Assembly (NCBI RefSeq): GCF_902713615.1
Contig: NC_052161.1
Span: 51,092,528-51,156,527, forward strand
Length of the DNA: 64,000 nucleotides
Source: Scyliorhinus canicula
Lineage: Eukaryota
Direction: 5' to 3'
Shown: positions 606 through 3,600 of the stretch, piece by piece
Layout: each line of letters begins with the position of its first letter
Numbering within the stretch: position 1 is the first letter of the stretch
Position numbers and translations under genes: made by a program
The notes under the pieces: model-generated
What the model was told of the DNA's origin: nothing
The model's database searches: none
What the model saw: only the letters and a program-made list of their open reading frames with translations

Positions 606-3600
606 ATGGACATCAGAGTCAAGCCTGACCGTCTGCAGCTGGATCCACACTCGCCTCACGCCAGAAAAGACTTTGATCACTGGCTGGCAGTCTTCGAGGC
701 CTACATCTCTTCAGCACACCCTCCCCCGACGGAGGGTCAGAAAAAGCAACTCCTGTACTCCAGACTGAGCTCCAGCGTCTTTCCGCTCATTCGAGATGCG
801 ACCGACTACACCGCTGCTATCGAACTGCTCAAGGAGAATTATGCACCATCGACGAACACCCTGTTTGCGAGGCATCAACTGGCTACTCGCAGCCAGCAGC
901 CGGGTGAGTCGATTGAGGACTTCTGGAGGGCCCTTATACCTCTGGTACGAGACTGCGACTGCCGGGCCCTCACAGCCACGGAGCACTCTAATCTAATCAT
1001 GCGCGATGCCTTTGTCACAGGCATTGCATCGGACCCCATCCGGCAACGACTGCTGGAAGGGGTCGCTCCCGACCTCGCGGCCGTAAAGGCCCTGGCACTC
1101 TCCATGACGGCCGCCTCCCGTAGTGCGCAAACCTACTCCGCCAGCCACTCGGCCCACCCGTCCTACCCCTCGTGGACCCCACAAACGGCCCCCCAGGCCC
1201 ATCCGTCCTACCCCGCGTGGAACCCGCAAACGGCCCCCCCAGCAGCCGCCCCCGCGCACCATGCCTGCGCTGCCCGCCGCACCGCACCCCCTGGGGGTCC
1301 CCACTGTTACTTCTGCGGTCAGCAGAAGCACCCTCGCCAACGCTGCCCGGCCCGCACAGCGACCTGCAAAGCTTGTGGCAAGAAAGGCCACTTTGCAGCG
1401 GTGTGTCAGTCCCGGACGGTCGCCGCTATCGCGCCGCAGGTCCCCTCGCCTCAGCCGCTCCCCCAATGGGCCCCGCCGTCCGCTTCTCCCGACCCCACGT
1501 GCGATCAGTGGGCGCCGCCATCTTTTGCCGCCCCCGCCACGTGCGCCCCATGGGCGCCGCCATCTTCATCTACCACAGCCATGTGCGTTCCATGGGCGCC
1601 GCCATTTTGTTCCGACCCCATGACGGGCGCTCCATGGACGCCGCCATTTTACCCACAGGTGCTGCGGATGCCGACATCTAGACTCCAGGGGCCGCCATCA
1701 CGGGACACGGGTCGCTACCGCTCCTCGTCGGACTCATCGGACTCAATCGCCGACCAGCCACTGCTCGCCTCCGTTACGCTCGACCAGTCCCGTCCTCGCA
1801 ACCTGGCACCCTCTTCCACATCGGTGCTGGTCAACGGCCATGTGACCTCCTGCCTCATAGACTCCGGGAGCACCGAGAGCTTCGTCCACCCAGACACGGT
1901 AAGGCGCTACTCCCTTGCGGTCCATCCCGCTGACCGACAGATCTCCCTTGCCTCCGGTTCCCACTCTGTCCCTATCCGGGGTTTCTGCCTGGTTAAACTC
2001 ACTGTACAGGGCGTGGATTTCGACCGTTTCCGCCTGTACATTCTCCCCGACCTCTGCACTTCCCTCTTACTAGGCCTGGATTTCCAGTGCAATCTCCAGA
2101 GCCTCACCCTCAAATTCGGCGGACCCCTACCTCCCCTCACCGTTTGCGGCCTCGCGACCCTCAAGGTCGAGCCTCCCTCCCTCTTTGCCAATCTGACTGA
2201 GGATTGCAAGCCCGTCGCCACCAGGAGCAGACGGTACAGCACCCAGGACAAGGCCTTCATCAGGTCCGAAGTCCAGCGGCTGCTTCGGGAGGGTATCATC
2301 GAGGCCAGCAACAGCCCTTGGAGAGCCCAGGTGGTAGTGGTTAAGACTGGGGAGAAGCACAGGATGGTCGTGGACTACAGCCAGACCATCAACCGGTACA
2401 CGCAGCTCGACGCGTACCCCCTCCCCCGCATTTCTGAGATGGTCAATCAGATTGCACAGTACCGGGTCTTCTCTACTATTGACCTGAAATCCGCCTACCA
2501 CCAGCTCCCCATCCGTAAATCGGACCGTCCCTACACTGCCTTTGAGGCGGACGGTCGTCTGTACCAATTTCTGAGGGTTCCCTTCGGCGTCACGAATGGG
2601 GTCTCGGTCTTTCAGCGGGAAATGGATCGAATGGTTGACCGGTACGGGCTGCAGGCCACCTTCCCGTACCTCGATAATGTCACCATCTGCGGCCATAGCC
2701 AGCAGGACCATGATGCCAACCTTCATAAATTCCTCCACACCGCGTCTCTCCTGAATCTCACGTACAACAAGGAGAAATGCGTGTTCCGCACAGACCGCTT
2801 AGCCATCCTTGGCTACGTAGTCCAAAACGGACTACTGGGGCCCGATCCCGACCGCATGCGCCCCCTCATGGAGCTTCCGCTCCCCCACTGCCCCAAGGCC
2901 CTCAAACGCTGCCTTGGGTTTTTCTCTTATTATGCCCAGTGGGTCCCGCAATACGCAGACAAGGCCCGGCCACTTATCCAGTCCACACATTTTCCCCTCT
3001 CGGCCGAGGCACAACAGGCCTTCGCCTGCATCCGATCTGACATAGCCAAGGCGGGGATGCACGCCGTAGACGAGACTCTGCCATTCCAAGTAGAGAGCGA
3101 CGCTTCAGATGTCGCTCTTGCCGCCACACTAAATCAGGCCGGCAGACCCGTGGCATTCTTTTCACGCACCCTCCACGCCTCTGAAATTCGGCATTCCTCT
3201 GTCGAAAAGGAGGCCCAGGCAATCGTTGAAGCAGTGCGGCACTGGAGGCATTACCTGGCCGGCAGGAGATTCACTCTCCTCACTGACCAACGGTCGGTAG
3301 CCTTCATGTTCAACAACACGCAGCGGGGCAAGATCAAGAACGACAAAATCTTGCGGTGGAGAATCGAGCTCTCCACCTTTAACTACGAGATCTTGTATCG
3401 CCCCGGCAAGCTCAACGAGCCCCCAGACGCCCTCTCCCGAGGTACATGTGCCAGCGCACAAGTGAACCAGCTCCGTGCCTTGCACAACAGCCTTTGCCAC
3501 CCGGGGGTCACTCGCTTGTACCATCTGATCAAAGCCCGCAATCTGCCCTACTCCGTCGAGGAAGTACGGACAGTCACCAGAGACTGCCAGGTCTGTGCGG

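Follow-up and report, generated by a model that had tools for sequence, protein, structure and literature searches.

YLDN in Place of YxDD in the Reverse Transcriptase of an Intact Gypsy Retrotransposon of Scyliorhinus canicula and of Many of Its Relatives

A recently inserted retrotransposon in the genome of Scyliorhinus canicula carries Tyr-Leu-Asp-Asn (YLDN) at motif C of its reverse transcriptase (RT), and comparison with its relatives indicates that it very probably represents a metazoan-wide clade of Gypsy elements in which the third catalytic carboxylate is usually Asn, as a natural state that is tolerated or selected and not as a defect. In this large clade of animal elements Asn is found under selection and in fresh insertions, although the same change, introduced experimentally, abolishes transposition in both Ty1 and Ty3. 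The element lies in a stretch of 64,000 nucleotides (NC_052161.1, positions 51,092,528 to 51,156,527, forward strand), referred to here as the window; all coordinates are given relative to its first letter.

Structure and Insertion of the Element

The element, which extends from 323 to 4959, is, in its overall organization, an ordinary kind of element: an intact LTR retrotransposon of the Ty3/Gypsy type, recently inserted in the genome of a cartilaginous fish (Table 1). As the preliminary description had stated, its LTRs are identical, in all 254 of 254 positions; they have TG..CA ends, and the 5-bp duplication CTCAG is found on both flanks. A single ORF, the only long one of the region, encodes gag, protease (PR), RT, RNase H and integrase (IN) in an order that Pfam matches identify as Gypsy-type. 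The window contains no ambiguous bases (N), and a blastn search with the element revealed no second copy within it. No chromodomain was matched at the integrase's C-terminus by Pfam at E <= 0.01; this C-terminus is proline-rich.

Table 1. Features of the element and of its insertion site (window coordinates)
Feature	Position	Strand	Basis
Target-site duplication CTCAG, left copy	318..322	.	Read directly; same 5 bases after the 3' LTR
5' LTR, 254 nt, TG..CA; TATAAA box near 462, AATAAA at 521-526	323..576	+	100% identical to 4706-4959
R-region LTR segment including AATAAA, pairing with the primer-site stretch	511..526	+	Exact 16-nt reverse complement of 578-593
Primer-binding-site-like stretch, self-complementary, directly after the 5' LTR	578..593	+	Complement and fold
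gag-pol ORF, single, 1328 aa, 0 stops	606..4592	+	ORF translation, Pfam
Aspartic protease, residues 406-493, DSG motif	1821..2084	+	Pfam PF13975/PF13650/PF08284
Reverse transcriptase domain, residues 580-738	2343..2819	+	Pfam RVT_1 E = 3.5e-23; Ty3 RT 4ol8_A E = 2e-48
Motif A catalytic Asp D626	2481..2483	+	Invariant in 121 sequences; aligned to Ty3 motif A Asp
Motif C Y688-L689-D690-N691, TAC CTC GAT AAT	2667..2678	+	Read directly, in frame; relatives and Ty3 alignment
RNase H domain, residues 800-925	3003..3380	+	Pfam RT_RNaseH / RT_RNaseH_2
Integrase zinc-binding and DDE core domains, residues 956-1112	3471..3941	+	Pfam Integrase_H2C2, rve
Polypurine-tract-like AGGGGGTGAA, adjoins the 3' LTR	4696..4705	+	Read directly; GGGGTGAA in the same place in ray copy L081
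3' LTR	4706..4959	+	100% identical to the 5' LTR over 254 nt
Target-site duplication CTCAG, right copy	4960..4964	.	Read directly

The surroundings of the element and the linker between gag and protease are repetitive. The insertion site lies between a minisatellite (25-50-nt units, GGGCCCAGACAG..., 92-270) and a (TC)n microsatellite (4968-5004). The linker contains in-frame tandem repeats at 1151-1239 and 1495-1647, with units of 45 nt in 2 copies and of 42 nt in 3.6 copies, which encode proline-rich peptides of the W-A-P-P type; read pile-ups over these repeats contain length variants and joints. A candidate for a diverged solo LTR at 7809-8094 was rejected, as it gave no blastn match with the element at E < 1e-5, and the LTR alignment across 7790-8110 was loose, consisting of a few short blocks only.

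Motif C of the Reverse Transcriptase

The YLDN tetrapeptide that the preliminary description had singled out was read directly from the sequence, in frame and within the uninterrupted ORF (context TFPYLDNVTICG). A phmmer search against solved structures returned Ty3 RT as the best match (4ol8_A), followed by 8r0s, a chain with the title 'Enzymatic polyprotein', and by a number of RTs from retroviruses. Ty3 RT (PDB 4OL8, 7Q5B) is accordingly the closest solved homologue, aligned over RT and RNase H, and N691 falls on the second Asp of its YLDD, D214. The canonical F/YxDD of motif C is usual in Ty3/Gypsy elements without being definitional for them; here it is YLDN. The residues that follow the motif, [VI]T[IV]CG, are common to the whole clade in both its D and N forms, where Ty3 has ILIFS.

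Other catalytic positions of the polyprotein are conserved. In an alignment of 121 proteins, RT shows no variation at D626 and Y688 and at least 90% conservation at D690, so that these essential residues do not toggle; D832, E869, D894 and D941 of RNase H, as well as D1025, D1083 and E1119 of IN, are likewise invariant or at least 90% conserved. Together with the Pfam domains, this agrees with the earlier impression that PR, RNase H and IN have intact catalytic residues. A single codon cannot be tested against chance, and the weight given to N691 comes from its conservation across relatives.

Asparagine among Related Elements

With the RT-RNase H part as query, a word search recovered 1730 relatives at E <= 1e-10, and the best 120 were aligned. 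The tetrapeptide among these best 120 of 1730 is Y[LMIV]DN in 93, YxDD in 26 and decayed in 1; all 12 of the cartilaginous-fish proteins in this set contain YLDN. The closest relatives listed are from S. canicula itself (86%), S. torazame, Hypanus sabinus, Narcine bancroftii and Mobula hypostoma, and others belong to a sea anemone, to a nematode and to a damselfly or lie on metagenome contigs, of which there are many; identity across phyla is ~60%. The clade may correspond to the Mag/Jule lineage of Gypsy. The relatives are mostly YxDN, which argues against a family consensus of YLDD from which the window element would depart as a singleton variant. Their proteins are already public, under the title 'uncharacterized protein'.

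Five full-length relatives (P0012, P0031, P0039, P0055, P0106) are deposited as bacterial MAG proteins, with titles such as 'Rhizobiales bacterium', 'DDE-type integrase/transposase' and 'transposase InsO'. These are probably eukaryotic contigs that were mis-binned into metagenome bins.

The preliminary description had proposed to look at whether Asn is encoded by both of its codons, and it is. In a scan of metagenome contigs that provided 80 related DNA loci, the Asn codon is AAT in 36 and AAC in 14, and the Asp codon is GAT in 17 and GAC in 10. For the 37 loci whose RT-RNase H part is uninterrupted, a tree requires at least four AAT/AAC switches among the Asn-bearing rows. The use of both codons and the switches between them indicate that Asn has been kept through synonymous turnover. 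LTR identity of 99-100% is also seen in many other YxDN loci on long contigs; on short metagenome contigs, assembly collapse may account for LTRs that are identical.

For close relatives, the DNA covered comprised two loci (L081 and L082). The first, from the electric ray N. bancroftii (JAZHEF010000019.1, L081:1727-6689), is an apparently fresh insertion of the same clade, with an intact ORF of 1457 aa, identical LTRs of ~240 nt and its own 5-bp duplication, ATCTC. Its motif is TAT CTG GAC AAT; the codons for Y, L and D differ synonymously from those of the window element, and AAT is kept. Between the two elements dN/dS of RT-RNase H is 0.045, with synonymous sites saturated. Strong purifying selection acts on RT-RNase H in the Asn lineage. 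With 93 of the best 120 relatives being YxDN and with both codons in use, this favors the second of the two possibilities raised at the outset, a lineage whose active site is altered by nature.

Changes between Asp and Asn

The distribution of the two residues was mapped on a maximum-likelihood tree of 121 RT-RNase H sequences, built with the four motif columns removed and without a named outgroup. The window element falls inside a starred clade of 13 cartilaginous-fish-type rows, all of which have Asn, and this clade is in turn part of a larger one, likewise starred, with 31 rows (29 N, 2 D). At least 12 D/N changes are needed on the tree, 7 of which are forced by starred branches alone. When the D/N labels were shuffled, the mean was 23.9 changes, and 0 of 500 shuffles gave a number as low as 12.

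The two Asp-bearing rows P0027 and P0037 form a YMDD pair with full domain sets, deep inside the clade of 29 N and 2 D. Because of this nesting, parsimony requires an Asn-to-Asp reversal wherever the root lies outside the 31-row clade. Changes have therefore apparently occurred in both directions, as judged from root-independent counts and this one nested reversal. A co-variation screen for columns that switch together with D/N, which comprised only 7 independent contrasts and had low power, detected none. E672 and V677 are among several columns in which the D and N groups have different frequencies, and these do not switch at the independent contrasts.

Comparison with Other Polymerases

The consequences of replacing these Asp residues have been studied in several retroelements. 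For Ty3, a review of Bibillo et al. 2005 (PMC5371799) reports that D151N and D213N abolish polymerase activity, that D214N and D214E keep it with reduced processivity, and that all four substitutions are lethal for transposition; the authors of the mutagenesis suggested that D151 and D213 coordinate the catalytic metal and that D214 assists catalysis. The change at D214 is thus artificial and transposition-lethal in Ty3, whereas in the clade of the window element it is natural, clade-wide and present in freshly inserted copies. In Ty1, a member of a different superfamily (Ty1/Copia), D211N is the same Asp-to-Asn change at the same position, the second Asp of YXDD: polymerase activity is kept in vitro, but transposition is blocked, kpol is reduced ~223-fold, Mn2+ is preferred, pyrophosphorolysis is impaired, and suppressors in the RNase H domain provide a partial rescue (PMC2148107). 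No co-varying, suppressor-like column was found in the clade of the window element (7 contrasts). Retroviral Asp mutants are dead (PMC2148107, PMC554778). These published results match the background given for the D-to-N change in the preliminary description.

Natural Asn at the same RT position is known from the BEL/Pao elements, in which it is treated as a feature of the lineage. YVDN is reported for Cer7-Cer12 of C. elegans (Bowen and McDonald, cited in PMC554778 with the comment that activity was untested), and the nematode belpaoviruses, Atlas virus among them, are described as being set apart by it (PMC9094657). BEL/Pao is, however, a different superfamily of LTR retroelements. We rejected membership of the window element in it, as the Pfam matches are restricted to RVT_1, RT_RNaseH, RT_RNaseH_2, rve, Integrase_H2C2, gag-asp_proteas, Asp_protease_2 and RVP_2, and the nearest structure is that of Ty3. 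Since the RT matches Ty3/Gypsy and not BEL/Pao, Asn represents an independent occurrence here, with repeated toggling between D and N. A literature search of limited coverage found reports of YxDN in BEL/Pao only and none in Gypsy; a clade-wide Asn variant appears to be undescribed for Gypsy, where it parallels that of BEL/Pao.

A more distant analogy is offered by the RNA polymerases of the Mononegavirales, a natural lineage of right-hand polymerases in which motif C is GDN, with Asn for the last Asp. These are RNA-dependent RNA polymerases and are unrelated in sequence, so that the likeness is one of analogy only.

Function of an Asn-Bearing Reverse Transcriptase

If the roles assigned by Ty3 mutagenesis hold in this clade, the conserved Asp of motif A and first Asp of motif C would form the metal-coordinating pair. 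The third position toggles between Asp and Asn by single G/A transitions, with both states persisting in intact, selected elements. The RT of the window element would then be a working two-carboxylate enzyme, with Asn in the assisting position, in a clade background that accepts either residue. From the purifying selection, the turnover of codons and the presence of fresh insertions in two species, we infer that the Asn-bearing RT polymerises and supports complete retrotransposition in the clade. What speaks against tolerance is that the same change blocks transposition in Ty1 and Ty3; by analogy with these elements, a context effect belonging to the clade would be needed. One candidate for such a permissive context, offered as speculation, is the conserved ...[VI]T[IV]CG sequence after the motif.

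The behavior of the Ty1 and Ty3 Asn mutants, which do not transpose, would fit YxDN elements whose RT is dead and which depend on YxDD relatives of the same genome for mobilisation in trans, a mode that the preliminary description had allowed, and YxDD and YxDN elements are indeed interleaved on the tree. The level of constraint on RT-RNase H (dN/dS 0.045) would, however, be unexpected for the unused RT of a parasitic element. Furthermore, YxDN occurs throughout the cartilaginous-fish relatives listed, all 13 of the 13 rows in the cartilaginous-fish clade have Asn, no close Asp-bearing helper was found on the tree, and the Asn codon has been kept despite synonymous turnover. We therefore consider mobilisation in trans very unlikely, and favor an Asn-bearing RT that is functional in its own right.

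The Self-Complementary Primer Site

Directly downstream of the 5' LTR, the window element has a stretch that is complementary to the R part of its own LTR, across the AATAAA (Table 1). The stem formed by the two segments is present in the minimum-energy fold of 490-600 (z = -3.1). We applied the complement test to all related loci with recognisable LTRs and found exact complements, 12-19 nt long, in the corresponding position of thirteen YxDN loci (L003, L004, L005, L009-L012, L025, L035, L044, L046, L055, and the ray copy L081, in which the complement is 14 nt). The same layout accompanies Asp in L017 (YLDD, 16 nt) and L040 (YLDD, 12 nt), and the decayed loci L051/L052, with Asp at the second position, have a primer-site complement of 15 nt. 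In total, the layout was found in at least 15 related loci; L068 also has it. As Asp and Asn elements share it alike, the layout does not depend on the D/N state, and the self-complementary primer site is a position-conserved trait of the clade.

The priming of Ty3 relies on a tRNA, whereas the window element has a self-complementary primer site. In this respect it is closer to Tf1, whose primer is complementary to the 5' region of the element's own transcript and not to a tRNA. From its sequence, the primer site of the clade looks like one for putative self-priming in the style of Tf1 and the sushi elements, its complement being likewise in the element's own 5' RNA. It differs from theirs in that no chromodomain was detected in the window element, and in that the complement is located inside R, over the AATAAA, and not at the very 5' end.

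The co-occurrence of Asn and this primer site in the window element had been taken as a sign of a distinct replication chemistry, in which Asn in motif C would be functionally coupled to a self-complementary, tRNA-independent primer site. Such coupling is very unlikely, given that the layout of the primer site is the same in the YLDD loci L017 and L040 and in the Asp-bearing L051/L052 as it is in the YxDN elements, and this part of the preliminary description is not supported.

Transcription and the Origin of the Asn Codon

A poly(A) single-cell RNA run contains 1083 reads on the element, 103 of them at >= 99% identity, and near-identical contigs are present in runs that we guess to be RNA. 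This suggests that the element family is transcribed. The transcripts bear on a further explanation, A-to-I RNA editing, by which AAU would be read as GAU and the protein would have a canonical YLDD. The first base of the codon is A, making the chemistry compatible, and the toggling between D and N runs along the same A/G axis. An A>G change at 2676 is absent among the poly(A) RNA differences listed, at a depth that is low; these differences are the best-supported ones only, position 2676 itself is not scorable, and Asp-bearing copies in the same genome are possible. A further objection is that edited genomic RNA would yield G in new DNA copies, in which case Asn would not persist across phyla and with both codons. 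We give RNA editing very little credence.

Least credible of all is that Asn is a lesion confined to this copy, with GAT having become AAT (G-to-A) either during reverse transcription or once the element had inserted, in a family that is really YLDD: a single transition would suffice, and neither Ty1 nor Ty3 can transpose with this change (PMC2148107, PMC5371799), but Asn is present in 12 of 12 cartilaginous-fish proteins and in 93 of the best 120 relatives, in the independent ray copy L081 and in the form of both codons, while descent of all these from one damaged ancestor is excluded by a dN/dS of 0.045 and by ~60% identity across phyla.

Implications

In textbooks, YxDD is treated as invariant in RTs, and copies with YxDN tend to be scored as dead by annotation pipelines and by readers. 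For these Gypsy elements, checks of the catalytic motif are unsuitable as a means of calling a copy inactive. The natural Asn variant, so far reported for BEL/Pao, is hereby extended to Gypsy.

Returning to the reading of Asn as a natural, tolerated or selected state, we tentatively raise a stronger version of it, which we regard as possible although doubtful: that the clade constitutes a natural two-carboxylate RT system, in which the third Asp is dispensable for complete retrotransposition and has been flipped between D and N many times and in both directions. The Asp and Asn states may trade off processivity, metal preference or pyrophosphate release under selection by host or element. Were the two-carboxylate reading true, natural D/N sister pairs would provide a ready system for the role of the third Asp of YxDD, and such sister elements would allow a test of what the third carboxylate does when RT catalyses and translocates.

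Copy Number and Subfamilies

Two DNA runs from the same organism yielded tens of thousands of contigs on the element, most of them at 90-99% identity; the family is very large. Read depth is uneven along the element: in runs X7 and X13, the summed word-depth over 323-4959 is 10-20x higher in the RT, RNase H and IN parts than in gag and the LTRs. There appear to be many related subfamilies that have pol in common but not their gag or LTR sequences.
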